Source of the DNA: Caecitellus pseudoparvulus
Lineage: Eukaryota > Protista > Bigyra: Bicosoecida
Direction of reading: 5' to 3'
DNA: 64,000 bases
Assembly (NCBI GenBank): GCA_965644315.1
Contig: CBFFRQ010000092.1
Coordinates: 62,001-126,000, forward strand
Shown here: positions 7,301-63,182 of the stretch, piece by piece
Layout: the number at the start of each line of letters is the position of its first letter
Numbering within the stretch: the stretch's first letter is position 1
Translations under genes and position numbers: made by a program
The notes under the pieces: model-generated
Told to the model about the DNA's origin: nothing
Database searches by the model: none
Seen by the model: only the letters and a program-made list of their open reading frames with translations

Positions 7301-7412
7301 CGGCATCCAGGACCTGGCCTCTTTCCTGCGAAGCAGGGAGTTCACGTCCTACGGCTTCAAGCACAACCCGACGGCTGAGCGCGTGGAGCTGCGCTTGACC
7401 CAGCGCCTGTGA
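4323..7412 (+). CDS. MCM2: DNA replication licensing factor MCM2, 4 exons (first coding exon is the ATG alone)
   Basis: N-terminal EGEDLIHDDMMRDY...LDQYD histone-binding region, C4 zinc finger, Walker A GDPGTAKSQ, IDEFDKM, MCM2-type VRHIESM. Introns 4326-4449, 4569-4697, 4877-4989. Confidence 0.96.
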
Positions 7413-23700: not shown

Positions 23701-24673
23701 CTTTGGTCGCACTGGGGAGTACTTCCGACGTGCCACGAGTAACTTGGCCTCGGGGGATGCCCGCCTCTCCCACACACTGCGTCTGCTGAGCTTGGGTGCA
23801 GACGTTGCGGGGGGCACGCTGGACGTGGTGTCACGCGGCATCGCCTCCGCGACGGGGGACACCGCCTCCCTCGCAGCGACAGAGGCTGACCGCCAGCGCT
23901 TTGAGCAGGAAAACACAGGCGTGGGGGTGGTGAAAGACCTGGGCATGGGCATTTTCCGAGGCGTGGCAGGCGTGTTCACCAAGCCTGCCGAGGGGGCGGC
24001 ATCCGGGGGTGTGGCTGGCTTTGCGAAGGGTCTGGGGCAGGGGGTCCTGGGCCTGGCTGCCAGCCCACTCATGGGCATCAGCACAGCCACACGGCGCATC
24101 GCGTCCGGCGTCAACCGTGGCGTGGCCACTGACGCTGAGAAGATGACGATCTTCGCCCCCCTTGTGCGGCGGCGGGCCCGTCACGCGCCTTTGGGACCCC
24201 AGCGCCTACTGCGGCCGTACAACGCTCAGCAGGCGCTGATGGTGCAGGTGGCGCTGGGCATGCATGCCAAGGCCGGCACGGGGGACTTGCTGGTGGACTG
24301 CGCAGAGCTGTCCATTGAGCGAGACGGCAGCTCCACCCTGCTGCTCGTCACGACCTTGGGCATTGGCCTGGTCAAGCTGCAGCGGCAGGAGACGGGCGCC
24401 GCTCACCGCATGCTGCAGACCCTGGCGGGGCCCGCCTTCCCAGGCGACGTGCTCACCTTCCAGCGCTGGGAGCCTGGTGCGCAAGCCTTTGAGTGGGACA
24501 TTGCCCAGCCGTCGATGCTGATCCTGCACAGCCATGGTCAGGCTATGGCGCTGCAGATTGGAGATGCTGGCCTTGCAGAGTCTCTGCTGCCACGGGTTCA
24601 GGCTGCGCAGCTGCAGTCTGCAGCCTTTGTCTCCACTGTGCAGCTGGCAACCGGAGCGGGGGAGGCTGTGTAG
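8733..24673 (+). CDS. VPS13: VPS13-family bridge-like lipid transfer protein (~5270 aa), 3 exons
   Basis: Chorein_N start MLKGLLAQ|VLVGALGDYVEG..GTVDLHDLRVKEE|ALDGMEVPFRVKRGVIG (introns 8757-8826, 8938-9007); IVNNIRISVSRVHLRFED; VFNAASGAWEPFL; GLGLSLVD..ETLYLS; ATG2_C-like GVAGVFTKPAEGAASGGVAGFAKGLGQG. Confidence 0.93.
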
Positions 24674-36098: not shown

Positions 36099-37863
36099 AT
36101 GCAAGCTTGCCTCTCCCGTTCGGCGGGATTCGTGTCCAGGCGGTGGCAGCAAGTGCCGAAGCTTGCATTGGCACACTTAGCTAGGCTGCTCTCCACTTCT
36201 GACTTTGATGCCGGCCTCCAGGCCCTCCTGGGCGGAGTACCTGGTGCTGTAGATGAGCAGGCGAGTCCAGCCGCCGCCGAGGAGAAGTCTGTGGACTTGC
36301 TGGTCATTGGCGGAGGCTCAGGTGAGCAGGGAGCCCCGAGAACCCGTTTTCGTTAGACTTCACATGCACTCCCTTGCCCTCTTTTCCACAGGTGGCTTGG
36401 CTGCGGCGCGGGTTGCGGCGGAGCTCGGTGCCTCCGTGGCGCTGGCGGATGCCGTGCCCCCCAGCCCTCGAGGCTCCACGTGGGGCCTGGGCGGCACCTG
36501 TGTGAATGTCGGCTGCATACCCAAGAAACTCATGCACCACGCTGCGCTGCTGGGGGAGACGGTGCGGGACGCAGGGGCGTTTGGGTGGGATGTGCCGCCC
36601 AGCGTGCAGCACAACTGGGAGGCGCTGCGTGGTGCAGTGAGCGACGTGCGGAAGAGCAGCAATTTCATGTACCAGAGTGCCATGTGGAGTGCCGGAGTGG
36701 ACTACGTCAACGACTGGGCCCAGTTCGCCCCTGATGGGCAGGTGCAGGTGGGGAGCAGGCAGGTGCAGGCTGAACACGTACTTCTGGCGCCAGGGACACG
36801 CCCGAGCAGCTTGTTGGGCACCCAGCAGCAGCCCTTGGATGCGAAAGTCGTGACGTCGGATGACATATTCACCCTGCAAGAGTTCCCTACCAGGGTGGTC
36901 ATTGTGGGGGCTGGCTACGTCGCCCTGGAGTGTGCGGGTTTCTTGCTGGGGCTGGGCGCGCAAGTGACGGTTCTGGTGCGTGGGCAGATCTTGCGGGGGT
37001 TCGACCGGGACTTTGCGAGCAAAGTGCACTCCGACCTGGTGGAGCGTGGGGCGGCGTTCCATGTTGGCGTCGTGGATGACATTCTGGACGCCGATGGCGG
37101 CGGTGTTGTCGTGTGTACATCCGAAGGCGAGCAGCTGCCTGCGAACGCCGTACTGAATGCGACAGGGCGCTCAGCCCAGACCCTGGGCATGGGGCTACAC
37201 TTCAGGGGGTACGATGCAGCGGCGCTGGAAGCAGACAGGGGCTTTGTGCGTGTGGACGAGGGGGGACTGTGTCAAGTGCAGGGAGCGGCGGGAGTGTTCG
37301 CCGTGGGCGACGCGGTGCTGTCCAACCCCCAGCTGACACCGTTCGCGATTAAAGAGGGCGAGATGCTGTCTCGCCGCCTCTTCGCGGGGGCTACCGCGAC
37401 CCTCTCAAGGTCTGCCGTTCCGACAGCGATTTTTACCCCCACGGAATACGCGTGTGTGGGCCTGAGTGAGGAAGAGGCGAGGGAGAGGCACCCACAAGTG
37501 GAGGTGTACCACACGAACATGACCCCCACCGAGTGGGCACCTCCAGCTCTGAAGAAGCCTAAGAACAAGTGCTCTGCGAAGGTCATCGTCGTGCCGTCGC
37601 CCGGCTCTGCCGCTCCGCCGGGCGACGGCTGGGCAGCAGAACACCCGCCGAGCCACCAGCAGGTGGTGGGTGTGCATTTCTTCGGGCCACATGCGGGTGA
37701 AGTCATGCAGGGCTTCGGCGTGGCGCTGAACACGGGGCACCTGACGCTGGAGACGCTGCAGCAGAGCACGGGCATACACCCCACCCTTGCTGAGGAATTC
37801 GTGAACCTCTCCGTGACCAAGTCCAGCGGCGTGTCCCCAGACAAGCAGCTGTGCTGTGGCTGA
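36099..37863 (+). CDS. TXNRD: High-Mr thioredoxin reductase, probably mitochondrial, with C-terminal Cys-Cys-Gly
   Basis: LLVIGGGSG|GLAAA (intron 36322-36391), GGTCVNVGCIPKK, GAGYVALECAGFL, GIHPTLAEE, ends QLCCG*. Arg-rich, acid-free first ~33 aa. Confidence 0.92.
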
Positions 37864-43718: not shown

Positions 43719-44738
43719 TCACCTGGCTGCAGCTGCCCGCAGCAGCAGCATGGTCTTCCGGCCCCGCCGAGTGCTTGTGCCACCCCACACAGCGTCTTTG
43801 GCCGGCCGCACTGCCGCCTGTCCAGCTTCGAGTCGTGCGTGAAGGGGGATGGCTCGATGGCCGGTCAGGCCCAGCAGCTCACGCAACACGCCCGGCATGT
43901 TATGCAGAAGTGCCTCCTTGAAGGCGGCGTCAGGCCCATGAGATCCTTCTGCATGCACATCTACTGCACGCTCTCCCGTGAGGGCCAGCAGTTGCTGCAC
44001 TATGTCCACATGGCCATGCGTACAAGCGTTGCGGAAGGCCAGCTCCGGGCCATGCTTGCCAGCGGCGTGCACGTCCACTGCACGGGCGCCACTCAGTGCG
44101 AGTAGCTCGCGCACCACACTTGCATGACCGTTTACACATGCCCACTTGAAGGCGGCCTCGCCTTGGCTGTTCACATCCACTGCACGGTCGCCGCTCAGTG
44201 CCAGCAGCTCCCGAACCACGCCAACATGCCCCAGGCGACAGGCCTCACGAAAGCCGGCTTCGCGCCCATACTCATCTGCGGCGTGCACATCCACCTGCCG
44301 ATCACCGCTCAAGCTCAGAAGCTCCCGCACCACGTCTAAGTGTCCATGGTTGCATGCCCGTCGGAAGGCTGCCTCAGGGCCATCCCCATCGTCGCCGTGG
44401 ACATTCACTGCTAGGGGCTCATCCAGCGCCAGCAGCTCGCGCACGATGTCGAGGTGCCCTCCACTACATGCCTCTATCAGTGCGACATCGAATGCACCGC
44501 GCATGTCGGCGCTTCGTGCTTCAGCTAGACTGATCAGCTCCCTCAACAACGCAAGGTGGCCCTCCCCTCCAGCGACGGCAGCTCCAATTGATACGTTCTC
44601 CACCGAAAGCGAAGCCATGCAGCTCTTGGCGGCGTCAGAATCCTCCCCTAGCAACGCGACCAATGCGCTTACACGCTGGTCCCAGCATGCTCTCCTCCAT
44701 CGACGCAGCCAGTCGCCGCCGCCGCCCTGGTCGTCCAT
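43719..44738 (-). CDS. Intronless 38-aa ankyrin-like repeat protein, copy 2 (339 aa, one extra repeat)
   Basis: Paralog of 42337-43254 with a 34-aa insertion NSQGEAAFKWACVNGHASVVRELLALSGARAVDV. Confidence 0.85.
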   Translation of the reverse strand: MDDQGGGGDWLRRWRRACWDQRVSALVALLGEDSDAAKSCMASLSVENVSIGAAVAGGEGHLALLRELISLAEARSADMRGAFDVALIEACSGGHLDIVRELLALDEPLAVNVHGDDGDGPEAAFRRACNHGHLDVVRELLSLSGDRQVDVHAADEYGREAGFREACRLGHVGVVRELLALSGDRAVDVNSQGEAAFKWACVNGHASVVRELLALSGARAVDVHAAGKHGPELAFRNACTHGHVDIVQQLLALTGERAVDVHAEGSHGPDAAFKEALLHNMPGVLRELLGLTGHRAIPLHARLEAGQAAVRPAKDAVWGGTSTRRGRKTMLLLRAAAAR

Positions 44739-45143: not shown

Positions 45144-48100
45144 TTAGTCAAAGAGGCCGCCAAGCCCCTCACTGCTGTCTGTCTCGGATCCGGTGTAGTC
45201 TGACTCGGAAACCTCGGAGTCGGAGCTGCCAAAGAGGTCATGACTGTGGTCGGGCGCAGCAGCTGCGCGTGCGGAGCCCTTGCTGCCAGAGATCTTGGCG
45301 CCCAGGGACTCCATGGCGGTCTTGCGCACGGCAGCGGGGAGGGCAGAGGCGGAGGCGATGGGGTGCACGGCGCGCATGGAGGCGTTCTTGCCGTACATGT
45401 TCACCACGAGGTGGATGCCGCTGCGCTTGGGCTCCTTGATGGCGGGCTCCGCGGCGGCCGCACCACCGGCCTCCTCCTCCTCACCTTCGCCCTCCTTGGC
45501 GGACGAGCTGCGGCCGAAGAGGGAGGAGAACCAGGACTTGCCCTTGCGAGAGGACTCGGTGGACTCTGACGCGTCACTGCGGCTGGAGCGTCGTGCCCGG
45601 CCACCTCGCCCGCGGCCGCGCCGGCCACGCGGTGGCGCAGTGCCGCCAGTGCTGCTGGCATCCTTGGGGGGGCGGCCTGGATCCTCGATGCGCACGCCGT
45701 TGATGTACAGGTATGCCTTGCCTGCCTCGAACAGGACGCCGATGCGGTCCCCCATGCCCGGCTTGAAGGAATCGGATGAGCCAGGCAGCTTGGTGCCCTC
45801 GATCTTCCAGTACTGGGCGCCGATGCTGGACATGTTGGTGCTGCCGTCATGCGTGCCGCGCTCGCCCCGGCCCTTGAAGATACCCACCTCCAAGTACCCT
45901 GACCAGGTCGTCTCCATGCGGTTGATCTCGAACTCCATGTACCCGGGGTCAGTGAAGTCGGTCTCGGAGAAGACGTGCGCGTGGTAGGAGGAGGTGCGGT
46001 TGGCCACTGCACCCGGCATGCTCACGCCACCACCTGGGATGGAGATGGTGGCACCACTGGCGGTGTCGCGCTCCTCCGTCAATTCGTGGTCGCGAATGTC
46101 CATGCGGGAGGACGCCGTGCCGCGGTGCCAGGACAGCAGCTGGTGGTACTTGGCGCACTTCTTCATGGCCAGGCGCTTGCGCACAGCCTCCCGGCGAGTC
46201 ACCATGGCAGAGGCAGCCAGCTCGCGCTCACGGTCACTGAGGGCCACTGCCGCGGCATCTCGCGCCACGCCCTGCACGATGGCCAGCTGGCGCTGCAGCA
46301 GGGGCACGAGGGCGTCACGGTAGGCACGTCGCAGTGCGACGCTGCGGGCGGAGCCCGCCGAGGCGAAGTAGCCGTTGGGGCCGACAGGCGCGGCATCCTC
46401 CTCGTCGTCGTCGTCATCCACATCGGCTTCAGGGTTGGTCCACTCCCACTCCCTGTCCGTGTCGTAGCCCGTGGTGGCCTGCACCACCTCCTCCAGCTCC
46501 ACCACATGCTCGGCCACCAGCGGCTTCAGCACATCCCGGTCGTACGCCGTCACCGATGCGACCAGGCGGGCCAGGGAGTGCAGCTGCGACACGGCAGCCT
46601 TGAGCTGGGCGCGCTTGCCCTCCTCCTTCAAGCTCATGGCCAGGATGGCGCAGTTCTGCACGACGCGGTACGCCGCGAAGGCAACAGAGGCGGCTGTGAT
46701 CTCGCTCTCCACCTCTGCCAGCACAGCCGAGTCACGCGCCAGCAGGGCCGTGGCGGTGAGCTTGGGCAGCGCAGCGCGCATGGAGCGTGCTGCGACAGAC
46801 AGGGACTTGACTCGGCGTGACACGAGGTCGAACTCTGCCGCGGAGCCCTTGCCAGTCTCGATCTTGACCAGTTCCCGCGTGCAGGTGCCGGAGGTGTGGT
46901 AAGGGCCGTTGCAGCCCCAGCACCACTCGTGGCTGCACTTGCGGCAGGTCATGTGCGGGCAGCCCTTGTTCTTCTCGATGCGCACGCCGCACTTGGGGCA
47001 GGGCTTGGTCATGCTGAGCATGAGGGAGAGGCTCTCCATCTCAGACGCGGACAGCTCCAGGAAGCCGCGCTTGCCGCGCCAGTCCTCCATGAAGGAGCAG
47101 GGCACTGGTGCGTGGGCAGGCAGCCCGCAGTTGACGCACTTGACCAGCCCGGAGCCTGGTGGGCCCATCTCGGCGGGGAAGTGCTTCAGGCGTGCAGCGG
47201 CACGGTCCTCCTTCGTCATGCCTGCCTTTGACTTGGGCTTGCTTTCCTTGCTCTCGGCCGCAGCGCCGCCGCTGCTGGAGGCAGTGGGCGCGGGGCGCTT
47301 GGCACCTGCGTCCGTCACCTTCACCACAGTGGGCAGGGGAGGGAAGAACAGGCGGAAGTCCAGGGAGTCGGTGGCGGCACTGGCGGGCGCGGGGCGCTCC
47401 GCCGTCACGCCTGAAGACGGCACCAGGCTCTTGGCGAGGCCCCACAGCGAAGCAGTGGGGGGACGGTACAGTGCTGAGGGCGTGTAGGGGGACGCCGTCG
47501 GGTTGGACAGCGCCGTCAGCGGCGCGTCGCCGGAAGAGCCCATGGTGGCCGACACCGCCAGCATGGCAGAAATGGCGATGCCCTCCAGGGAGGAGTCGGC
47601 GCGGTACAGGGAGCGCCCGGCAGCGCTGGGCTCGTCGCCCGCCGTGGCGCCAGAGCTGGTGGCCACAGCAGGCCCTGACGCGAACTCGTCTGCCAGGACA
47701 GTCTCCCGGAAGTGCTTCACGTCCTCCTCAGCGATGCCGGCGCCCTCGAAGTCGTAGGAGGCCAGGGCGGCACTGCACTTGGAGGCCCAGCACTTGATGT
47801 GGGCGTCTCCTTGGCGCACCTTGCCGACTACGTGGGCGCGCCAGCAGCCGGCGCAGGAGCGGTGCCCACACCAAGCGGCAAAGGTGGAGGAGAAGGGCAC
47901 GTCGTCCAGGCACACGGGGCACTCGAACTCCACGCGGCTGCCGAGGTCAGCCAGGGTGCTGCGCAGCTCAGCAAGGCTGGGGGCGGGGCCGGACCAGCCC
48001 GAGGCTGCCGCGTCTGCAACGGCCGCCTTGAACGCGGCGCCACCCTCCAGCAGGCCCGCGTGCTGGTGCTTGTGCCCGGTGCACACGGGCACTGCCTCCA

Positions 48101-51100
48101 TGGGGGACAGGGGGTGTGTGGAGGGCGCCGCGTCGCCCAGGTGGCGGGGCAGCGGCCACAGGAAGGGGTTGGCTGCCCCCAGAGCCTGCAGCGTCTCCTC
48201 CGTGAAGCCGGAGGAGACGTCCACGCCGGCCTCTGCCAGGGCAGCCGCCAGGATGGACGCGGAGCTGGGCACAGCAGAGGTGTCCTCTCCCGCATCCTCC
48301 ATGGCGGTGACGAGGGAGGCAGCCTGCAGCAGCAGGCCCACGGCCGTGCCGGCGGGCTCTGCAGTTCGGCCGGCCTGGGCGCGCAGGTTGGCCTGGGCCA
48401 CCAGCCAGCGCTCCAGCAGCACATCCACGCGCCAAGAGCAAGCTCGCAAGAGGACCTCTGCGTCAGCCAGGGAGACGGTGAGGGCGTCGGCAACTGCCTT
48501 GCACAGCTGCATGACCTTGGCTGCGAGGCCAGAGGCGGGGGATGCCCCCGCGCCCTCAGTCAGCAGCGCCTTGGACTGGGCCCCGCCGGCAAGGGAGGAG
48601 CCATGGGCGGCAGCCGAGGCACCAGAGGGGGCGGCCAGGCCGTGGTCCGTGGAGAACTGGCGCGTGAGGGCGCCCAATCCAGCAGGAGGGCCGGGGGGCG
48701 GCGGGATGTCATCGTCGCCCATCGGCACGCCTGTGCCGGGCAGCTGGCTGGCATCCACCGAGCAGATGGCCGCCAGGGCTCGCTGCGCAGCAGACAGCGC
48801 CTGGCGCTGGGCGGCAGAGGTGTCCGCAGCCGGCTCGGCGTGCTTGCTCTCGGCAACGCCGCCCATGTAGTCCTCCTCTTTGCCCTCGCCCGCCTCCATG
48901 GGCGGGCGGCTGCTCAGCACCGCCGTGCCTTCGCAGACGTCGGGCACAGAGGAGAAGGTCGCGAGGCCGGCCAGGTCCTCCGCCGTCTCGTCCGGGACGT
49001 AGGCCAGGGCGGGCTCGGAGCCCATGAAGCGCTGCTCGCCGCCCAGCGCCTCTTCATCCTGCTCCATGGCAGTGCTCAGGGCAGCCAGCAGGGCTGCGAC
49101 GAAGTTGGGCGTCTCCATGGACTTGTCCTCGTTGCCACCTGGCGTGGTGGTGGCGGGTGCCTCCTCAGGCTCCTCCTCCTGCAGCTCAGACTCGGCCTGG
49201 GCGTCGGCCAGGGCGCCCATGAAGGACGACAGCGTCTCTTCATCGATGTCGTCCCCTGACAAGTCCACGACGGCCGTCGTGCCTTCCTCGATGGCTGCCA
49301 GCAGGGGCGCCAGCTTGGGGTCGGCGTCCTCCTCCGAGCTGGAGGACAGCAGGAGGTTCTTCAGCAGGCTGGTGTTCACGGTGACCTTGGAGGAGCCCTC
49401 CAGCTCTGTCACATCCAGGTCCCCTGACCGGGCGCTCTCTTCCTTCGGCGTCCCCTTCACCTGCTCATACGCGTCCAGGAGGCGCTTGAAGAAGGCCAGC
49501 AGCTGCAGGGCACCTTCCCGGGACCACACGCGCACGCTGGCTTGGCGCAGGTACCCTGCCGTGACCAGGGACGTCACGCAGCTGGAGAAGTCGTCCCACG
49601 TGACTGGGAAGCGCCCAGCGACGTCCTCCACCACGCGCGCGTGCACGGTGCGCAGCGGCAGCATGGCCATGCCCTTGCAGGCCGAGACGATGGCGGCCTT
49701 GAGCACGACGCGGCGCCAGGTGCGCACCGAGGCGCGAGCCAGGGCCTTGTCGCTCTCCGACTCGCCGCCGTCCTGCTCAAGAGCGGACAGGGTCACGCGG
49801 TGCACTGTAATGCTGCTGCGCTGGGAGGCGAAGGCCGTGTTCAGCACGAACAGCGTGCCAGCGGGGAAGGCGTTCTGCACCGTGCCGGCCAGTGTCACGC
49901 CGTGGCCTGGGGCCTCCAGCGCATCCGGCGGCAGCTGCGCCGTGAGCAGGTCCTGCCCAGGGGCGGTGAGGGCGAGCAGTGCCGCCTCCACGTCCACACG
50001 CAGCGTGCGGGCCTTAGCTTCGCAGTCGCTGTCGGAGTGCCCTAGAAGGTGCAGGGGGGGCATGAGGGCAGCGTGGATGTGCTCCACAGGCACCTGGATG
50101 TCGTCCCCCGCCCCTGCCGTATCAGAGTTGAACAGCTCCAGGATGGAGCCCTGCAGGGTGGTCAGCGTCACCTCCCCGTGCCAGCGGGGCAGCTTCACGC
50201 TGAGCGTGATGGGGGACACATGCAGGGCCCAGTGCAGCTGCCGGTTCCCCACCGCCGCCTTGATGCCGGAGTGCCCGCTCTTCACCAGCCCGCTCGTGCG
50301 GGCGGTCGCAGCCGAGGAAGACTTGGCGAAGGGGGAGGTGAGGGGTGCTGCCGAGGGACCAGACACGCTGCCGCCAGAGGCCAGTGCCACCAGCTTGGGC
50401 GCGTCGGGGATGCTGCCCACCTGCGCGTCCTCCAGGTTGCCGAACAGGTGCGCCGTCACGAAGTGTGGGTACACGCTGCGGGCCAGGGTGGAGGCCTCTG
50501 CGGGGGACAGCTGCGCCAGCGCCTGCATGAAGCCGGGCGGCGTGGCGGTGAGCGTGCTGTCGCTGGCGGGGTGGTACCCGTCGCCGTGGAAGACGCTCTC
50601 GTACGTGTGCAGGACGGCGGCCCATGCAGGGGGCAGGGAGAAGGTCGCCCCGAAGCCCTGCAGGGGGCCGTGCCAGCGGTGTCCGCAGCCGACGAAGGCG
50701 CTGATGTCGCCGTGCATGACAGCTTGGGACAGGGAGGCGGGCAGGGAGGGCACTGCGCCCAGGCCCAGGGACACTGCCAGGGAGGTGGGCACGATGGAGG
50801 TCGTGGGCGCGGTGGGGGCAGTGGGTGCCGCAGCAGGCACAGCCACCGCCTCGCCGCCGTCCTTGGACTCGAGGGACCCGGACAGCAGCGCCGACAGGTC
50901 AGCCGCCTGGTCCGCGGGCATGCTGCCCAGCAGCTCCGCCACCTCGCCCGCTGCATCGCCGTCCGCGGCGCCGGTCTTGGACTCGGCAGCTGTGCGCGCC
51001 GCGACGGCAGAGGCGACGGCCTGGGCCTGCAGGCGGCGCTGCAGGGGCGTGTTCAGCGCCGAGGCGGTGTGTGCGTCCACCAGCAGCTCGCAGGCGCGGA

Positions 51101-54100
51101 ACCAGTGCTCTGCAGTGGCCTGCAGCACGAAGCCGGACGTCGCGTCGCCAGGCTGTGCGCCCAGCTGCGTGGCGCCGGCCGCGGCGGGGGTCCATGCGGC
51201 GGGCATGGAGGCGACAGAGAGGGGGGCAGGCATGCCCAGGGGGGGCGCGCCTGCTCCGCCCAGCGCCTGCACGCTGTTTCCGCCCGCTGGCATGGCGCCC
51301 AGGCGAGCAGACATCATGGCGGGGTCGGTGCCGGCGGCTTCACGAGCCTCGGCAAGGCCCGCGTCCTCCTCATCGCCGCCCTGGCCGCCGCCTCCGCCCC
51401 CAATGAGCATGTCCTCCACCTCGGAGTCAGTGTCTACGTCGGCCATGCCCCCTCCATCTCGGCGGGAGGAGCGGATCTTGCTGGTCTGCCCCGCCAACCA
51501 CGCAGAGCGCTTGCGGTAGGAGGCAGAGCCTGCCGTCAGCACGGCCGACTTGGAGGCAGGCTCCGCGAGCGTGTTGCCACCACCCAGCGCCTTGAGCACA
51601 GACGCCTCGGCAGCGAGGCCGATGGAGCGCTGTGCGACGAGGCGGCGAGCCAGGTGCTGGGTGTAGACGGGGGCGGTGTCGGCGCCGGAGCCCAGCGCGA
51701 CGACCAGCTGGGACACCTGGCGGCACATGTCCACACGGGAGGCGACGGAGGTGGAGCCGCCCACGGCGACGTCCGCGACGCTGTCGTTGATGACGGCCTG
51801 GATCTCAGCCATGAGTGCCTCTGGGCTGGCTTCGCTGTCCAGCAACACGTGCAGGGCACGGCAGACGGCAGCGGCGATGTCCCCTGCCGCAGACGGCGCG
51901 AGGGCGGAGTACGCTGACCGCAGGATGGACGGCACACGGGCTGCGAACTCTGGGAAGCGCCCGAAGACCTCGGCAGACGCAACGTCCTGCAGGCGGCGCA
52001 TGTGGTGCAGGAGAATGCCCACGGTCTTGGCAGGGGTGGGGGCGGTGGACGCCTCCCCCAGCATGGACACGGTGGCGGCGTGGGCAGCATCGCACCAGAC
52101 GGCGAGGAGGGACAAGTACTGAGGCCCACGCTCGAAGGCGACGAAGTCACCGGAGGGCAGCACCACGGGTGCAGGCTCAGGCTCGCGTTCGTCCTCGCTG
52201 TCCGTCTCAAACGCGGCACCCTTGGGGCGGGGGTTGCCACCCTCCTCGTACCACTGGATGCGCTCCATCTCAGGCAGCTCGCCAGACCAGCCAGAGCCGC
52301 CCTGGCCGGAGTCCCACGTGATAGTGCAGTTGGAGCCGCTGATGTTGGTGATGACACCCTTGCTGGCTGCCGTCGCGCTGCCCCACCCATGGGCCACGGA
52401 GGTCAAGCCAGGCTTCACACGCACGCGGTCACCCACCTTGAGCGGGCTGGTGTCAGGCTTCTTGCGAGTGCGGCGGCGGCGGCGGCGGCGGCGTGCCGGC
52501 ACAGCCACGGAGGAGCTCTTGCTGGCCATGCCCTCCACGCTGAGGGGGTCGTGGCGCGCCACCAACACAGTGAGCTGGGCCGCCACCTCCTCTGGCAGCT
52601 TGGAGGCCCAGTCGCCCGCCAGGCCCAAGTCGTGGTGGCTGCCTGCTTCCGCCTCGGTGGGCGGCGGCATCAACACGCCCGTCGCGCCGTCGGTGTGCAG
52701 GCCGGCAGTGGAGGCCCCTGCCGAGACGGCGGCAGCGCCTGCCACCACCCCTGGCGGGGGCAGGGAGAAGAACATGGCAGAGGTGCCCGTGGCGGTGCCA
52801 GCGGCGGTGATGAGGCTGCCAACGTGGGCCTCGATGCCGTCCGCGGCACCCTGCATGGAGTCCTTTGCAGACACGGTGGCAAGGCCTGGCCCAGTGGGCG
52901 CCACGGCCTCTGCTACGGCCGGAGCATCCTCCATGATGGGCATCTTGCTGGTGGGGGACTGCAGCGTCACCTTGGCGCTGGCCAGGGTGCTGGCTGCCGC
53001 CGCGTACAGGGGCGTCTTGCCGTCCCAGCTCTTGGCGATGCTCCACTTGAGGATGAGCCCCGTCGTGCCACCCGAGTCGCGGTGCAGCTCCACGAGCTTC
53101 TTGTCGCAGTCTAGCACCCACCGGTACACGTGCCCGGAGCTCATGCCGAGGGAGGAGCCAGCTGGACCCTTGGTGGCCTTCTGGAAGCCCGATCCAGAGG
53201 GGGACGAGGAGGACATGTCCAGCTTGTTGCCGTTGTAGTACAGGCCGTTGGAGTCACCGTGGCGCAGGCACCAGGAGTTGGGGCACTCGGACGAGCCCAG
53301 CAGCTGCGTGTAGCGGTCCACATGCAGCTTGCTGCTCTTGGGCACGATGCCGATCTCGGTGGAGGTGCCGCCGGTGGAGCCGATGAGGCACTTCCACGTG
53401 TGCTTGCCCTTGGTCCAACCCTTGGAGCTGCGCACACCCGCCGTGCAGGATGGCGCGGAGTTCGTGCGGAAGGACGCCATCATGTCGCCGTCCGTCAGCT
53501 TCGTGTGGGGGCTCTTGGTTGCGGAGTCCCACTTCCAGCCCTTGGCGGACTTGTACTTGCCAGAGGGCCTGGCCTTCTTCGCCTTCACAGCTGGCGCAGT
53601 GACGACGTGCAGGGAGCTGGACTTGGCGGCAGCTGCCAGCACGAGGCCGTCCAGGTACGAGTGCACGAGGGTGCGGAAGCCGAGGCCCTCTGTGACGCCG
53701 GGGCCAGAGGCGGTGGGATCCAGGGGGGAGGAGCCCTTGATGTACTTCATCAGCCCGCCGGACATGTGCTGCAGCTGCTCCCCCTGCAGAGGTGCCTGGG
53801 CCATGCTGGCTGCCAGCGCCACCTGGGCCACCAGGGGCTTGGAGATGGGGCTGGGCAGCAGCAGGCTGCAGAAGAGGTCAGGTGTCCAGTTGCAGCTCAG
53901 CACGGCGGCGCCACGCGGCTTGGTCAGGGCCGCCACGATGGCGTCCTTGGTCAGGGAGATGGCTTGCAGCGCCGCGACGGCGGGGCTCTGCACGGGCCCC
54001 ACGTCCAGTGCTCCGCGCGCGATGGCCGAGTCCGCCGCCTCCTTGGCCTGCACAGCCTTCACCCGGGCGGCGTGCATGGCAGCCTGGAAGTGCAGTGCAG

Positions 54101-57100
54101 ACAGCATGAGCAGGCGGGGGCGCAGGAAGGACGCGTAGCGCGCCACAAGGGGCAGGCACACCAGAGGGCTCAGCACGGAGAAGGCGGTGGGGTTCAGGTC
54201 CAGGGCGGGGGACGCCTCCTTGCTCTCTGCAGCCGCTTCCGGGGCGGCGGCGCCCTGCGTCAGCACAGGCTGTGCCGCGGCAGCACTGGCCGCAGCGCAG
54301 ATGGCGGCGGGGGCCCGACCGTACATGAACCCGGAGAAGGCAGCCAGGGTGTGCAGGGAGATGTGCCCGGACCAGATGGCCTTGCGCACGGCTCCCTTGG
54401 CCTTGCCCACGTCCATCCAGAACGCCACACCCTCGTTCACCTCCAGCTCGGCAGCGCTCATGCCCTTGGTCATGGCTGAGTCGCCGCCTGCTGCGGAGCG
54501 TGCTGGTGCAGGCAGTGTCGCGCCTGGCACAGCAGGCTCACGCCCATGCACCTCCTGGTACAGCTGAGCCAGGCTCTGGTGCATGAGGACGAAGCCCGGC
54601 GCAGAGCCTGGGCGCACGTCCGCCAGGCCGGCGCAGGACTCGAAGCAGGACACGCCGGAGGCCAGGGCGACGTCCAGGATGCCCACTGCGAACTGCACCA
54701 GGATGCGCTCGCGCGCCTGGTCAGCCTTGCTGCAGCCCGGCTTGGAGGACGGCAGCAGGCAGTCCCACAGCGTGCCTGCGACAGAGCCCACTGCCGCGCC
54801 GCGCAGGGCAGAGTCCAGCAGGGCGGAAATGCTGGCGGGGGGCGACGGGCCGGTCGGCTTGTCGGACTCTGAGCGTTCGGCAAGCCACGCCTTGTACGCC
54901 TTGATGACGTGGACCTTGTCCTCTTCGGGGAACTCTTGCTGCATCTCGGAGATGGCGGCACTCCAGCCTGACTGGGAGGGGAAGTCCACCTTCATCTTGG
55001 TGTCCGAGGTGATGCTGACGACAGTGCCCACCTCGCCGTGCTTCACGCTGCCCCAGCCGTACTGGGGCTTGCTGCAGCTGCGCTTGACAGAGCACTTGTC
55101 GCCGGGCGAGAAGGTGGTGGCTGTCGCCTTCTTCAGCACCTTGATGGCCTTGGAGCGGTGGGAGCCCGCGAGGCTCTTGGCGATCTTGGGCATCGCCACG
55201 ATGGTGTCCCACTCGGACAAGGCGGGCTTGGGCATGCCGCGAGGTCGCGAGGCGGAGGACACCTCGTCTTCCTCGGAGGAGGCGAACTCGTCCTCGTCGT
55301 CGGAGTGTGCGAAGAAAGACCCAATGTCCCAGGACTTGGGGCCCTTGCTGCCCTTGCTGGCCTTGCTGCTCTTGGAGGCGGAGGACTTGGTGCCGCCCTT
55401 GACGATGACGGCCAGGGTGGCGGGGTTGGACACGAGCGTCTCGCCTGCCAGCGCCACGCTGCGAGTGGCCAGCGCGTTCATGGCTCGCAGCAACTGCCAG
55501 CGCGTGACGGCCAGGCCCAGGTTCAGGCCCGCCAGCGCCTCCTCGGTGCTGCTCACGGAGCCCATGCCAGAGGCGGAAACATCACGCAGCTGCTGCTGCA
55601 GGGCCAGCGCGCGGGAGGCCAGCGTCATGACCGTGGGCAGGGAAGCCACGTCCAGGTCGCCCAGCGACCCCTCCTTGCGAGCCTTCTGGTCGCTCTGCAG
55701 GCGCGCACCTGCCGCGCTGATGGGCCCGGGGCCCCAGATCAGCAGGCGGGCCACACGGGCGTACAGTGGCGGCGCCTGGGCCCAAGCAGCCAGTGTCTCC
55801 GTCGCAGTGGTGGTGCCAGCTGCAGGGTCAGAGGGCGTCGCGGGCGTGCCGGCGGCAGCTCCGCCGGGCGCCGCGGACGTCGGGCGGGCGGCGGTGGGGG
55901 TGGGCTCTGCGTTCAGAGCGGCGTACTGGGAAGCCAGCTGGGACGCCAGTACACGGGCCATGGTGGCAACGGAGGAGGCCAAGGCTCGCTCGGCGGCGGC
56001 GGGCAGGGCACCCTCCCCTGTGCTGCTCGCCACGGCAGGCATGGCCAGCAGCGCTTGTGCCACCCGGAGAGCGAGAGTGGGGTGCAGGCCAGCGGCGGCC
56101 ATGAGCAGCTGAGAGGACACTTCCGACAGGGGCGGCAGGGCAGCTGCCTTGCCGCTGGCGGCGCCAGCTGTGAGCTCCTGGGCCGCGGCGGCCTCGGAGG
56201 CGGCTGCCTCGGCAGCTCCGCCGACGTCCACGCCGCCAAAGACGGGGTCGGCAGTGGCCAGGGATGCGGGGTCCACCTTGGGCGCAGGGGGCGCTTCCTT
56301 GGCGGCCTTCTTGCCCTTTCTCTTGCGCTTGGAGCGCGTGCGCTCCACGGAGGAGTCACTGTCAGAGTCAGCCGAGTCAGCGTCAGAGTCACTGCCGGAA
56401 CCCGCCTCCGAGTCAGAGCTGGCCTTGGCCTTGGCCTTGCGCTCAGCACGCTTGCGGGCCACCATCTGCTCGTGGGTTTCCTTGGGGGCCGTGTCTGCTG
56501 CGGCTTCCTCAGCTGCAGCCGCTGCCGCTGCCTCGGCGTCGACGGCAGCCTGGCTCATGCTGAGCGTGAGCAAGCCGTGTTCGGGGTGCGTGCAGATGTC
56601 CAAGATGGTCTTGCCCAGGGACATGATGGCAGGCGGCACCTCGCCCGACTCGTCACCGTCCCCCAAGTGCTCGGAGGCCTCCTGGATCAGGCTGCTGCGC
56701 ATGACGGGGTCAGACAAGTATGCCACGACGGCCTGCAGGAGGGGCACCTTCATGCTGATGCTGTCCATGCCGAGGGCAGCGCCTGCCATGGGCGCAGGGG
56801 CCCGCACGAGGCTCAGCAGGCCCTGCACTTGGGTGAGGATGGCCCCCGCTGGAGGCGAGCTGCTCTCGCGACCGGCCATATCTGGCACCGGCGCGAAGTC
56901 GCCGGGGTTTACCTCGGCAGAGGCAGCGGGGACGGGCAGCGCGCCGTCGCCCCGGGAGGCGACGTCCTCCAAGTCGGCCTTGATGCCGTCCACGACAGCC
57001 TGGGGCAGGCTGCCCTTGGCCACATACAGGTCCAGGAGGGGGGAGAGATGGCGCCAGGACAGCACGGCTCCAGCCAGCGCCGGCGCGTCGCCCAGCGCCT

Positions 57101-58415
57101 CGTACGTTGGGATGACGCTCTGCACCGTGCCCAGGCTGAGTGCGGGAGCAGGCCCGCCCAGGGCAGCCACCAACAGATTCGCTGCGTCCTGAGCAGACTG
57201 CCCAGTGCCAGCAAGCGCTTGGGCCAGGGACAGGGTGTCGGCAGAGGAGACGCCCTCCGCCTCCTCCTCAGACTCCTCGCCACCCTTGCCGGTGATGGAG
57301 ACCCAGGAGACGGGGTCCAGGACGTGCAGGGGCACGAAATGCTTGTACCCAGGGGGAGGTGACTCCGCCAAGCCCCACGTCAAGGGTTCCAGGTCTATGA
57401 CGCTGGTGCCGCTGGAGAACTTCACCTTGGCGGTGGCGCCGCTGATGCTCTTGATCGTGCCGCGCTGCCAGTACTTCTTGGCGTGCCCTGGGCGGGCCAT
57501 CTCCTGCGACGTCCCGGAGGGCAGCCACGCGCAGCCGGCGAGGTCGCTGGGAGAGCCACTGTGACCCCACTTGATCAGGTCATGACCGCGCTCGTCACTT
57601 GGGCAGTTGTTGCCTGAATGGTTGCCGTAGCGCCGGCCACAGACGGAGCAGATCTCGTCCATGTTGCTGGGGGCCGACGGGTACAGCGTCTTGGCCTTCT
57701 GCGTGAAGCGAGACCACACCGTCGCACCCACCAGCTTCTTGGAGCCTGCTGACACCAATTTGCGGAGCGCGGCCGCCTTCTTCTTGTCGGGGCGCCCGAA
57801 GAGGTCGGTGCGGTTGGAGGCAGGGAAGAGGGTGATGGGTTCACCAGGACAGTTGTCCTTGTCCACAACCTTGATGAAGCCGTCCGGGCCGCCGCCTGAC
57901 GCGTGGATGCTGCGAAGCACGCGGAGGTGAGGGGATTGCCACCACGCCAAGCTCAGGCACACGCGCGGGGGGAAGCGGCGAGAGGCACCGCCAGCTGGCA
58001 GCCTGCGGCAGGAGCACGTACCACATGGCAGGCAGGGGGACATGGAAAAACCTGGGCAGTGGGCGAGGAAGGTGGGCAGGTACCGTGCAGGGAGCGACCC
58101 GGTTCCGCATGCCAGGGTTGACGCCGCTCACTTCATGCCGTCGTGCGTGATGACCTTGTCCACGCGCACATTGCCACCCCTGCGTGGGCAGAAGCAAGCT
58201 CAAGGGAGTCGTGCAGGAGTCGTTTAGGTAAGGGCAGGGGCAGCTGCGGCGCACATGTCTTGTTGGTAGCCTCCCCTGCCAGAATGGCTGTGGGGCGCGC
58301 TGGACGATCCCTTGTGCAGGTGGGATTGGGAGACGCGCACGATGAAGAAACGCGTGTCCAGCTCGCTGGCTGAAGTGGGCTGCTTCTTAGGCAGGGCCAG
58401 CTTCTTCCGAGGCAT
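45144..58415 (-). CDS. Giant (~4300 aa) cullin-RBR fusion E3 ubiquitin ligase: SH3(HERC2/KEG-like), SPRY, SH3, cullin CTD/WHB, UBA-like, RING1, partial IBR, RING2, helical region, neuralized domain
   Basis: 12.9-kb open frame 45144-58043 plus probable 5' exons 58415-58255 and 58179-58132 (the next acceptor is ambiguous). Motifs are listed in the findings. Confidence 0.88.
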
Positions 58416-58877: not shown

Positions 58878-59215
58878 CGCAGAATCGCCACCATGATCTA
58901 CCTCGTCACGTCTCAGCTGTACGTGCAGTTCCTGCGCGCAAGCAGCAAGGGGTACGTCTTCGAAGAGTTTCAGCGTGAAACGCAGGCTGCCGCACACGTC
59001 CGCCCCCCTCCCCCCGTCGACTCAGCCGCATCTCCTCCAAGGAGTTCGCGGAGATGCAGTTCGCAGCTGGCTCCCTGTCAGCGTGAGCGGCCAGCGTGCA
59101 GGAGGAGGGCGCGCTGGCCGGTTGCTAAAGGAAGGGTGGCGTGCATGTTCTGTGGTTGCTGTCTGGCCACTCGCAATGCATTCCCACACGCCCTCGCGTG
59201 TCAGTGCTGGCCACT
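58878..59215 (+). CDS. Possible small gene or terminal exon (IATMIYLVTSQLYVQFLRASSKGYVFEEFQRE); boundaries unresolved
   Basis: Strong GC-ending codon bias at 58893-59000 after a candidate acceptor ccatcgcag; no confident gene model. Confidence 0.25.
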
Positions 59216-62200
59216 CACCGATGCACGCCAAACACCATGCCTGTGCGCGCCGAAAAGGCGTTGCCCTGACCACCCCACGCTGACCGGCTCTCGCCTGTGC
59301 GCTGTGTCGCTGGGTACCGTCCATACGGATCACGAGCCGAGTGCACGCGAATGCCAGGCACATGCCCTGCTGCGCCACTGCGTCCACCAGGGCCAGCGGA
59401 AGCGACACGGGCCCCTCGCACACCCGCCACGGCTGCTGCATGGGCCTCTGCCCACGCTGTGGCTCGTGGCGACACGGACCGCACACCAGACACAGTGGCG
59501 TGTGCGGGGTGTGCGGAGGCGGGGCGTGCAGACCGCGCCGCCTGTGCCTCCCGCATACGAGCCAGGGCCAGAGGCGGCACGACAACGCCGCCCACGGCGC
59601 CAGCAGGCGTGCCGCCTGTCCCTGCGCCGCCGAAGCCGTACGCTGTGCCGCTAGGTGCCACCCCCCGATGGGTGCCTGCGAAGTACCTGCCTCGGATGGG
59701 GGGTGCAGTGTGGGAGGCAGGGGTGTTGCCAGAGGAGGTGGCACCTGGCTTGAGGCTCCAGACCTGGGTGCGCCGACCACGGTTGGGCGCCGCAGCAATG
59801 CGCGCTGAGGCAGCAGCAGTGGGGGGAGCTGCCACAGTGCTGGCCTTGGCGGTGGGCGGGTGGGAGGTGGGGTCCACACTGCCTGGTGCAGGCTTGCGCT
59901 GGTACGAGTACAGTGGCGCTGTCGGCGCGGCAGCGGCTGAGCCTGGGCGTGGTGACTTGGACCTGAAGCGGCGGGGGGCGGTGCTGGGGCGCACACCCCC
60001 ACCCTGGCCATACCCGCTGCTCTGTACGTGGTCGTAATTCGCGCGGGGACCAGGTGCCTCACGGCCTGCGTACACCGCCGCCGCCGCCTGGCGCCGACTG
60101 GCGGACCGGGCAGATGATGGGCGCCCGCCGCCACTGCCTGAGCTGCCACTGCCCAGTGTGGAGTAGGGGCCAGCTGTGGCGGAGGGGGGTCGGGAGCGAC
60201 CTCGCCGCGCACTGCCAGGTCGGCGTGAAGAGGTGGACCGACGCGCTTTGCGAGAGGCAGAGGCTGGGCGGCTGCGGCGGGCACTGGTGGGGCGGGGGCT
60301 GCGGCTGCGTGTGGTGGCACTGGTGCCGGTACTGATGGAGTCCTTGTCGTCACCCCCCCCTCCGTCGGGGTCCGAGGGGGCGTGGCGCCCCCGCCCAGCA
60401 CCCCCCTCCTCTCGCTCGCCCGCGGAGGCGACAGGCAGGTCTGGGACAGGGGCAGGGGCTGTCTCAGGCACAGGAGAGGGAACGGAGGGCGTGGCAGCGG
60501 CTGGTGCGGGGGCTGCCTCCTCCACCACCGCCTCCTCAGCGGCACTGGTTGGGCGGGGGCTGGTGGAGCGGGGACGAGGGGAGGTTCGTCCCTCGCCGGC
60601 GGAGCGCATGGAGGCCATGCGCACCGACACGGCCTCTGCCGCCAGCTCCGCGCCAGTTTTCGGGGGTGCTTCCCGCTGTGCGTTGCGGGGGTGTGACTCG
60701 ATCTGCATGCCCGTCGACACACGCGACACGCCGAAGCCAGGCGCATCACCCTCCGCCGCCTCCTCAGGCGTCGCAGGCAGCTGCTCCACAGGCGAATCCA
60801 GGTCCACCACGTGCACTGGCCCGGCTCCACCCCGTGCCACAGCCAGCATGTCAGCTGCGCCACGGGCTGTGCCTGGGCGATCGCGCCCCCCTCCCAGGCC
60901 GCCGTCACCCGGCCCACGCCGTGTGACGGGGCGTGCCGAGGCGGCAGCTGCTGTGGTCGACGGAGGCGACTGCCCCCCTTGCTCCCTGGACGCTGCCGCC
61001 GCACGGGCCTGCTGTGTGCTGTACGCGGACCCCGTGCCGCCGCTGGTGCGGCCCAGGCGCTCGCCAGTGCTGGAGGGAGATGCCTCGCTGTCAGCTCCTG
61101 TGGCGGTGTGTGTGGTGATGGGATCAGGGGAGGTGGGCGCGTCCGTGCTATCCCTCGCGGCCGCTGTGGCAGTAGACGTGGCGGCTTCCTTGGCAGCGGC
61201 GGCGGCTGCCGCCTCCCTGGCTGTACGCAAGGCTCCCAGGGCTGTGGCGGGACGACGGGGGGCGACGCTGGAGCTGCGTGTGGTGGTCTTGTCGCCGCCA
61301 CTGCTGTGGTCACGCTGGGCGGGGCCGGATGCTGGGCGGGAGGGGCGGGCAGAGGAGGCCCGTGTGGGCTTGGCTGCCTCAGGCGCCGTGGCTGAAGCAG
61401 GTTCCTCCCCGCTCAGCTCCTGGTCCGACGCAGGGTGGTGCAGCGTGGAGGCGGGGCGGGTGGAGGCCAGGGAGTCTGTGCCCGAGGTGCCACTGGCACG
61501 AGTGGAGGGCAGGGCGCTGGCTGGGCGTGCAGGGCGCGTGGTGCGTGGTGTGTCGTCTGAGGGGGGTGCAGCGGAGGCGGGGCGCTGTGCGGGCGTGGGG
61601 GTGGCGTCCGGTGTGGCAGAGAAGGGGCGGGTGGAGGTGAAGGCGGGGACAGGGGCGGAGCCCAGCTCCCCCTTGGCCTCCATGCGCAGGGCCACGAGGT
61701 AGTAGGTGGTGGTGGCGTGGTTGTGGCTGGCCCGCTCCACGCTCTGCCGCAGTGTGCCCAGGTCGATGCCTAGGTCCGTCACCCGGCGCACGACACGGTC
61801 GTCCAGCTGGTCCAGGGAGGCGGGGAAGGGCGTCACGCCAGGGGGGATGGTGGATACTTGCGAGTACCAGGCGTGGCGTCGGATGTCGCCGGCTGTGAAG
61901 CGGGCTTTGGGGTCCGTGTTCAGCATGCGGCTGATGAGGTCCTTGCACGGCGCTGAGAGCCAGGTGGGGAACGTGTACCGCGCGTGCAGGATCTTGTCGT
62001 ACAGGGCGGAGGTGTTGGCGTCTTCAAAGGGCAGGTACCCCGCCACCATGGCGAACAGGACGACGCCCAGGCTCCACCAGTCCGACCGCGTGCCGTCGTA
62101 CCGATAGCCCTTGATCATTTCCGGGGCGGCGTAGCACGGCGAGCCACACGCCGTCTTCAGCACCTTGCCGGGGTCCTGGATGTTGGACAGCCCGAAGTCG

Positions 62201-63182
62201 ATGACCTTGATGCGGTACCGCCCATCCTTCGTCCGGCGCATGAGCAGGTTCTCGGGCTTCAAGTCTCGGTGGATGACGCCGACGGAGTGCAGGTAGTCCA
62301 CGCCGTCCACGATGTCGTGGAACAACCGACATGCGTCCGCCTCTCGCAGACGGCGTTTGCGCACAATGTACTTGAACAGCTGCGGGGGGGGGGGGACGGC
62401 GCGAGGGGGGTGCAGGGGGGGCACGCGGCTGCAGGAAACGCTTGGCGCCGTCGCGGGCGACCCGCCCATCGCCCCACCCTTGTCGGGGCGTCCTGACACA
62501 CACAGCGCACCAGCGCTGCTGAGTGACACGTCACAACGCACCTCTCCGCCATCTGTCAGTTCCATGACCAGGAAGATCTGCGGAAGGCGTCACGGGCGGC
62601 GGGGAGTGCCTGCACGCTGCCAACGCAAGTGGCAGAGGCACGGCCCGTTCGCACCTGTTTGGGGGCGTCGATGACCTCGAACAGCTGAATGACGTTGTCG
62701 TGCCGCACTCGCTTGAGGATCTTGATCTCCCTGGAGACCCGCTTCACGTCAGCAATCTGCAGAGGCAGCGGGGAGCAGCGGGCTGTGTCGGGGCGGCCAA
62801 CTGCACTGCGGCAGGCAGCGGCACTAGCCTCTCTGATTTTGTCCTTCTCCAGGATCTTCACGGCCACCTGCTCGTTCGTCAGGACGTGTGTGGCGATCTT
62901 CACCTTCCCGAACGTCCCCTGCCCCAGCGTGCTGCCCAGGACGTAGCTAGACAGCGGCCCAGACCGCTGCCGGCTTGGCGTTGTGCCGGCTGAGGCGCTG
63001 GCTGGCGCCGTGCTGGACGTGCCGCCTGTCGCGCCGCTGCTGACAGCGCCTGCTCGGGGAGTGCTGGAGCGCCCCCCGTACACAGCACTGGCTCGCATGG
63101 CAGAGGTGGGCCTGTGCCGTGCGCTGGCGGGGCGGCTGTGGCCCGCGGCGCTGCCTGGCCGGCTCGCGTACGTGCTCGACAT
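59215..63182 (-). CDS. SNF1/AMPK-related (CAMK group) Ser/Thr kinase with UBA domain and long Ser/Arg/Pro-rich tail
   Basis: LGQGTFGKVK, VAVKILEK, HRDLKPEN, DFGLSN, LKTACGSPCYAAPE, UBA-like HNHATTTYYLV. Introns 62757-62828 (GC-AG), 62578-62654, 62380-62541. The 3' end may be extended by a further intron (CG|GTGAGT at ~59218). Confidence 0.92.

Follow-up and report, generated by a model that had tools for sequence, protein, structure and literature searches.

CUL9 (PARC) joins a cullin and an Ariadne-type RING-between-RING (RBR) ligase in one polypeptide chain, and it has been described as a vertebrate-specific and late protein that arose from a duplicate of CUL7 and an ARIH gene (PMC11257990, PMC3817463). 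In the published history of the cullins, three ancestral members are recognized and CUL7/PARC is confined to chordates among animals (Marin 2009, PMC2785787). Here we examined a gene of this general architecture in the marine bicosoecid Caecitellus pseudoparvulus, whose genome has a GC content of about 65% and an 18S of 1,697 nt; the gene is located on the minus strand at positions 45144-58415 of a 64,000-nucleotide stretch (the window; contig CBFFRQ010000092.1 of assembly GCA_965644315.1, positions 62,001 to 126,000). Comparison of its predicted protein with other cullins and RBR ligases indicates that the gene is quite probably a diverged ortholog of animal CUL9/PARC and that the fusion family is older than the split between stramenopiles and animals. 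The best reading is that CUL9 belongs to an ancient family and is not a late vertebrate fusion of CUL7 and ARIH.

Probable kinship with animal CUL9 and the wider cullin-RBR family

Word-based homolog searches with the study protein and its paralog returned near copies only, and it was a profile search that uncovered the family. By searching 1.84 billion representatives, together with one further search, and then screening the hits for cullin homology, at least 16 cullin-RBR proteins were found outside named animals. The named carriers are Mallomonas annulata and Ochromonas danica, for both of which Pfam confirms the two parts; Ochromonadaceae CCMP2298 has an RBR fragment of the family, a transcript product of the amoebozoan Clastostelium recurvatum has a family RBR plus an EF-hand-like motif in common with chrysophyte proteins, and the remaining members come from gene-dense eukaryotic metagenome contigs. 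The study genome encodes four canonical cullins and one stand-alone Ariadne; it also has another cullin-RBR fusion, the paralog (2639 codons; L017:730-8646, plus strand, or about 696.7-704.6 kb of G000:C31), in which Tudor-like modules are inserted in the IBR, the Rcat His is missing and the WHB Lys is kept. A first-pass annotation of the window, made from its sequence, had known this architecture from animals only, a restriction that no longer holds in view of the Mallomonas, Ochromonas and metagenomic proteins and of the second copy in the same genome.

Two characters tie these proteins to animal CUL9, for which Acipenser CUL9, Clavelina CUL9 and one unlabelled chordate-like protein served as references. 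The linker between IBR and Rcat has 32-35 residues and a W..G[YF] motif in every cullin-bearing RBR whose linker is readable, as in all three animal CUL9s (26/26), and in none of the 37 stand-alone Ariadnes of the tree set. At IBR zinc site 1, the pattern C-x-N-P-x(1,2)-C occurs in 18 of 23 protist members, in 3/3 animal CUL9s and in a single one of the 37 Ariadnes; a looser expression for this site, which matched 10/37 Ariadnes, was dropped in favor of this stricter pattern.

Phylogenetic analysis of the RBR, carried out with both signature columns removed, split the fusions and CUL9 from the Ariadnes (support 99/94, with the bootstrap incompletely converged), and a grouping of CUL9 with the ARIH1-type clade was rejected by the approximately unbiased (AU) test (p-AU 0.009). 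When an RBR profile built from non-animal sequences only was run against PDB, human CUL9 came first with 262 bits, followed by ARIH1 (235) and ARIH2 (228). In a leave-out test in which the study gene's own group was excluded from the profile, the study gene scored 207 bits on the fusion profile versus 150 on the Ariadne profile. In the cullin tree, the fusions and CUL9 were separated from canonical cullins with 100/100 support and CUL9 was nested beside the metagenomic protein P0031 (97/91), all fusion cullins being long branches. The first-pass annotation had proposed an independently evolved ligase and had itself named a grouping of both halves with animal CUL9 as the result that would indicate ancient orthology; both halves do group in this way in the trees, provisionally so for the cullin, and the linker insertion and the motif characters are shared as well, which argues against its proposal.

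Accessory parts of CUL9 also recur among the protist members. P0154 has a DOC domain, and P0203/L153 contains a weak CPH-like segment. An ARM1 profile derived from three members without an animal label, which is significant for P0154, P0031 and L153, gave 13.2 bits for Clavelina CUL9 versus 3.5 for shuffled sequences.

Several further features of the family and its surroundings were observed. Upstream of P0203, an in-frame stop lies within the CPH-like segment (L153:945-950), which may be a tiny intron, an assembly error or a sign of a broken gene. An EF-hand-like motif between the WHB and UBA-like domains, possibly a calcium input, is found in P0029, P0014, P0200, P0032 and P0013 (chrysophyte-type and amoebozoan). 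In the alignment, the Clavelina CUL9-like P0204 has Arg at the WHB neddylation position, where the chordate-like P0050 has Lys. Among the sequences in the 90% cluster of the paralog is a fragment assigned to Symbiodinium sp. KB8, which may be contamination in that assembly. Finally, the study genome has large ankyrin-RBR proteins of 3128 codons (L018/L019, G000:C30) and 1719 codons (L020, G000:C13; C2-like and SPRY-like parts by eye), neither with a cullin or the CUL9 linker.

Domain anatomy and predicted mechanism

From N- to C-terminus, the study protein is composed of a zinc-knuckle-like motif, SH3_15, SPRY, a second SH3_15, the cullin C-terminal region, UBA-like, RING1, a broken IBR, Rcat, Ariadne and Neuralized domains, all encoded on the minus strand. 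The cullin and RBR motifs quoted in the first-pass annotation lie in one frame, within one or two codons of the positions it gave, and its catalytic Cys is placed exactly. Its description of a cullin followed by an ARIH-type RBR in one chain, as in CUL9/PARC, is borne out by Pfam, profile and structure matches, and its view of a self-contained E3-E3 ligase agrees with this anatomy.

The N-terminal part begins with a small CxxC..H..C motif (57603-57650), which may be a zinc knuckle; it is kept in P0002, a full-length ortholog from another species, and has no Pfam match. A segment that may be left over from ARM1 of CUL7/CUL9 (56700-56831) is the best-placed match of the ARM1 profile both here and in P0002; it is not significant, falling below shuffled controls, and the profile has no PDB match. 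The first Mind-bomb SH3 repeat (54939-55112) exceeds the Pfam cut-off (E 3e-7), and the second (52257-52442; E 0.07) is kept in P0002. Between them lies a SPRY/B30.2-like domain (52959-53537) that matches SPRY clusters of the ESM Atlas at 0.96 and has no Pfam SPRY match.

In the cullin region, three blocks match Pfam in the correct order, and low-complexity inserts split them. The first (51585-52034) covers the four-helix bundle and the start of the alpha/beta domain (Pfam Cullin positions 404-431, E 0.06; helical, with a predicted local distance difference test score (pLDDT) of 85-95; supported by alignment). A predicted RBX1-pairing strand and the next helix of the C/R domain follow (50590-50702), where a diverged alignment to the VLTxGxWP columns of canonical cullins suggests this role and the strand has low pLDDT. 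The alpha/beta sheet and WH-A occupy 49900-50249 (Pfam Cullin 521-570; AlphaFold model), and the WHB domain lies at 49545-49715 (Cullin_Nedd8, E 1.8e-4), with the neddylation-site Lys at 49676-49674; this Lys, the equivalent of K1881 of CUL9, is one of three columns invariant over 18 fusion cullins. Pfam scores for Cullin (E 5.7e-5) and Cullin_Nedd8 (1.8e-3 to 1.8e-4) are both under the curated cut-offs. Despite this, the cullin identity given by the first-pass annotation is confirmed, in that a family profile containing the study protein finds CUL3 at E 2e-43 and each of the top 50 Foldseek matches of the cullin model (mean pLDDT 63, high within conserved blocks) is to a cullin-complex entry (best E 8e-6, with low TM-scores). 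Canonical cullins are stand-alone proteins with N-terminal cullin repeats and an IVRIMK motif; in the study protein the motif has diverged, an RBR is fused to the cullin and the cullin falls outside the canonical clade.

The catalytic part starts with the Ariadne UBA-like domain (48393-48524; UBA_ARI1, E 5e-3; pLDDT >90) and RING1 (47775-47921; Pfam RING, E 3e-4), which aligns with RING1 of ARIH2, has its zinc ligands present and should bind E2. Not noted in the first-pass annotation is the loss of IBR zinc site 1, in whose place stands an insert of about 170 residues (47157-47672; pLDDT <50, with blocks kept in P0002). The site is also absent in P0002 and in the paralog, and P0053, a close relative, has both sites; because of this distribution, the loss is lineage-specific as judged from the aligned proteins. 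Zinc site 2 and the 32-residue CUL9-type linker (47010-47156, with W..RGF.E at 47081-47055) were assigned by linker and motif comparison. They are followed by Rcat/RING2 (46881-47009; catalytic Cys 46961-46959 and His 46955-46953; IBR_1, E 4e-14; ARIH2, ARIH1 and CUL9 in PDB, E 7e-14 to 5e-12), by the Ariadne helical bundle with one acidic insert (46161-46838; AlphaFold helices, Foldseek to ARIH1/ARIH2 at E 2e-6, profile alignment to CUL9) and, C-terminal to it, by a Neuralized (NHR) domain (45687-46139) over the Pfam cut-off (E 2.5e-6). A search with Pfam found no DOC domain, and neither CPH nor SBD was detected in the study protein; the SH3_15, SPRY and Neuralized modules are present instead, as the first-pass annotation had noted in calling the accessory modules unlike those of CUL9. 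The study protein is a variant by ancestry, in the CUL9 lineage by descent and without the DOC, CPH and complete IBR of a canonical CUL9.

With human CUL9 (PMC11257990) and the ARIH-cullin pairs (PMC3817463) as templates, the protein would work like CUL9, neddylation switching included. The cullin C-terminal region would bind RBX1 and the WHB Lys would be neddylated; NEDD8 would then bind the UBA-like domain of the same chain and the RING of RBX1 would engage the Ariadne domain, by which Rcat would be freed. RING1 would take E2~ubiquitin, and ubiquitin would pass to the Rcat Cys and on to substrates. In CUL9, CPH and DOC recruit different substrates (PMC11257990); here the SH3_15, SPRY and Neuralized modules that the protein itself carries could stand in for them in substrate capture. 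Human CUL9 is further characterized by neddylation through UBE2F and by a hexameric state.

A changed mechanism on the same ancestry, which is compatible with orthology, is unlikely though it deserves serious consideration: the cullin would be a scaffold that NEDD8 has ceased to switch, and the RBR would act differently or weakly with its broken IBR, which may alter the handling of donor ubiquitin. Such a change would fit a cullin divided by long inserts and scoring under Pfam cut-offs, the divergence of the RBX1 strand and WHB motifs, the loss of IBR site 1 and the paralog without its Rcat His. It would also fit the result of repeated searches of the study genome for a NEDD8 gene, in which none was found, a point that weighs against a neddylation-switched ligase. 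SUMO, a UBQLN-like gene, other ubiquitin-like proteins and a Ubl-PABP fusion were considered as NEDD8 candidates and rejected. On the other side, the neddylation Lys is present in the study gene, in P0002, in the paralog and in all 18 aligned members, the UBA-like domain is retained, and the genome has genes for RBX1, at about 60.3 kb of G000:C41, UBA3 and DCN1 besides its four canonical cullins; the NEDD8 gene itself may be concealed, because small genes in this genome are cut by many introns. By analogy, we favor a CUL9-like, neddylation-switched mode of action for the study protein.

The same genome has further ubiquitin-like sequences. A 79% identical ubiquitin copy (L055; G000:C8:22903-23118, minus strand) lies inside a 2814-codon frame, and its flanks may resemble an alpha-2-macroglobulin bait region. 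An intron-split ubiquitin-like domain (L158; G000:C56:48700-49800, minus strand) is apparently fused before a poly(A)-binding-protein-like RRM, and several polyubiquitin genes form a cluster (L056-L062; G000:C64, about 355-364 kb), including one diverged copy with drifted repeats.

Alternative histories, age of the family and gene model

A number of observations weigh against orthology with CUL9 or against a great age of the family. The trees are unrooted and contain no named human ARIH1/2, P0150 being an ARIH1-type proxy, and seven tree members are fragments that were picked by the signature. The cullin clade could be owed partly to long-branch attraction, and in a bigger tree, quickly built and holding more long rows, CUL9 was placed in an unresolved polytomy. 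Placing the study gene's group on the central branch was not rejected (AU p 0.39), and the study protein is without IBR site 1 and DOC. The members nearest CUL9 (P0031, P0154 and P0203) are without taxonomy, as are most carriers. An origin near the eukaryote root is based on stramenopiles, chordates and the single amoebozoan sequence from C. recurvatum, in whose available stretch no cullin was found.

Horizontal transfer of a fusion that arose once in protists, either to chordates or among protists, might explain why CUL7/PARC has been found only in chordates among animals (Marin 2009). The animal members that we found are likewise chordates only (non-chordate animals and unicellular holozoans lay outside the survey), and the CUL9 cullin is nested within the protist set. 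However, protists have a deep and diverse set of family members, and animal CUL9 lies on a long separate RBR branch. Giant fast-evolving genes are, moreover, commonly lost. Taken together, we regard such a transfer as improbable.

We consider it very improbable that a cullin and an Ariadne gene were joined in protists apart from CUL9. The accessory domains unlike those of CUL9 would suit such an event, as would the position of animal CUL9 as sister to the protist RBRs and not nested among them. Joining the study gene's group to the genome's stand-alone Ariadne lowered the log-likelihood by 29.9 and was not rejected (p-AU 0.079), and cullin profile scores favor canonical cullins (152 bits for CUL3/4, 97 for CUL7 and 73 for CUL9); both results count against orthology. 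However, an independent origin would require that the linker insertion of 6-9 residues, the IBR motif and the ARM1/DOC/CPH-like parts each arose twice. Both halves group with CUL9 in the trees, and at the family level this account is already largely refuted.

Descent from a fusion shared with animal CUL9 is our preferred history, and how old that fusion is can be stated with less assurance. We lean toward one more ancient class of cullins, a single-chain cullin-RBR E3-E3 ligase that goes back to the last eukaryotic common ancestor or close to it. This class may have been overlooked, given that its cullin falls below the cut-offs of hidden Markov models and that it seems to be absent from model fungi, plants and invertebrates; CUL7 would be CUL9 minus its RBR, and modules (DOC, CPH, SPRY, Tudor, SH3, NHR and EF-hand) would have been swapped around a fixed core, of which the IBR is broken here. 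The passages covered of two eukaryote-wide surveys contain no protist cullin-RBR, and a literature search for CUL9 in stramenopiles and for cullin plus IBR in protists or oomycetes found no paper, although an earlier mention in closed publications or in the annotation of databases is possible. What surprises is how old the cullin-RBR family seems to be and how widely it occurs outside animals. If true, stramenopile orthologs would reverse the published history of CUL9 and add an ancient cullin class. Natural variants without DOC/CPH, with half an IBR or without the Rcat His test what the CUL9 mechanism needs, and culturable protists such as Ochromonas could offer a simple system for the poorly understood core function of CUL9.

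The gene model was assembled by hand, and the homology and domain searches were run on its long exon. The minus-strand open frame has 4327 codons and ends at 45144. All domains lie within one open frame, in line with the single open reading frame of the first-pass annotation; the span that it gave this frame (45144-58415), however, is interrupted by three stops close to the 5' end. Reading of the sequence revealed three short GT-AG introns, which give a model of four exons from an ATG at 58415, with a summed length of 13005 nt, in frame, and a product of about 4334 amino acids. Exon 1 (58255-58415; 161 nt) ends in a GT donor and is like a block 5' of the ortholog (pairwise E 1e-7); exon 2 (58132-58179; 48 nt) has AG/GT ends and is kept in the ortholog locus L015; exon 3 (58022-58051; 30 nt), also with AG/GT ends, has a 71% identical block in the ortholog. 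Exon 4 (45144-57909; 12.8 kb) holds every recognized domain in a single open frame, and contigs aligned at 46500-52300 have no splice joints. The ATG at 58415 is a plausible start codon, because the GT-AG introns restore the frame and the ortholog is preceded by the same short blocks of coding sequence.

The gene is one reading frame under purifying selection; 37 of 40 strain differences listed from public contigs fall at third codon positions, the cullin-RBR linker included. RNA-library contigs cover most of 46.5-52.3 kb, piecewise. That two adjacent genes were taken as one through an artefact of assembly or annotation is hardly credible: although a contig bridging WHB and UBA-like domains was sought among those of confirmed RNA runs and none was found, and contig X13 has a gap at 49242-49459, the frame is open throughout, the same fusion occurs in an independent assembly (P0001, product 99.4% identical) and at full length in another species (P0002, 41% identity), one public contig spans 46500-52164 with a 6-nt indel as its sole difference in length, the third-position bias runs through the linker, and the fusion is found again in many species. 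The neighboring genes of the window (4881-7412, 8969-24673, 25084-27540, 36253-37863, 43719-44738 and 59215-62565) are ordinary eukaryotic genes, namely an MCM helicase, VPS13, two ankyrin proteins, a pyridine-nucleotide oxidoreductase and a Ser/Thr kinase, with no visible functional link.

Comparison with known systems

The giant HECT and RING ligases HERC2, HECTD1, MIB1 and NEURL4 use the same promiscuous accessory domains as the study protein (SPRY, MIB-SH3 and Neuralized), but they have another catalytic core and no cullin. CUL7 is an atypical cullin of the same lineage, which has ARM1 and DOC in common with some protist members and differs in being without an RBR; it might have arisen as a duplicate of CUL9 whose RBR was lost, which would turn the published account around.

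ARIH1 and ARIH2, which act with neddylated CUL1-5 (PMC3817463, PMC7904520), have the same catalytic parts, are the best Foldseek matches of the C-terminal model of the study protein and presumably follow the same activation logic (NEDD8 with the UBA-like domain, RING with Ariadne). In contrast, they work as two separate proteins with exchangeable substrate receptors, and Ariadnes have a 26-residue linker, a CP-x-x-x-C start of the IBR and a LERYLHY motif, none of which is present in the study protein.

The closest system is human CUL9/PARC (PDB 8Q7E/8Q7H; PMC11257990). Both proteins have, in one chain, a cullin 4HB-C/R-WHB region with the neddylation Lys followed by UBA-like, RING1, IBR, Rcat and Ariadne domains; in neither was a canonical receptor-binding cullin N-terminus detected, the length and motif of the IBR-Rcat linker agree, and the corresponding halves cluster together in the trees. 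They differ in that the study protein, at 4334 amino acids versus 2517 in human CUL9, has long low-complexity inserts in its cullin and an insert at IBR zinc site 1 and, with DOC, CPH and SBD undetected, carries two SH3_15 repeats, SPRY and a C-terminal Neuralized domain around the same cullin-RBR core.

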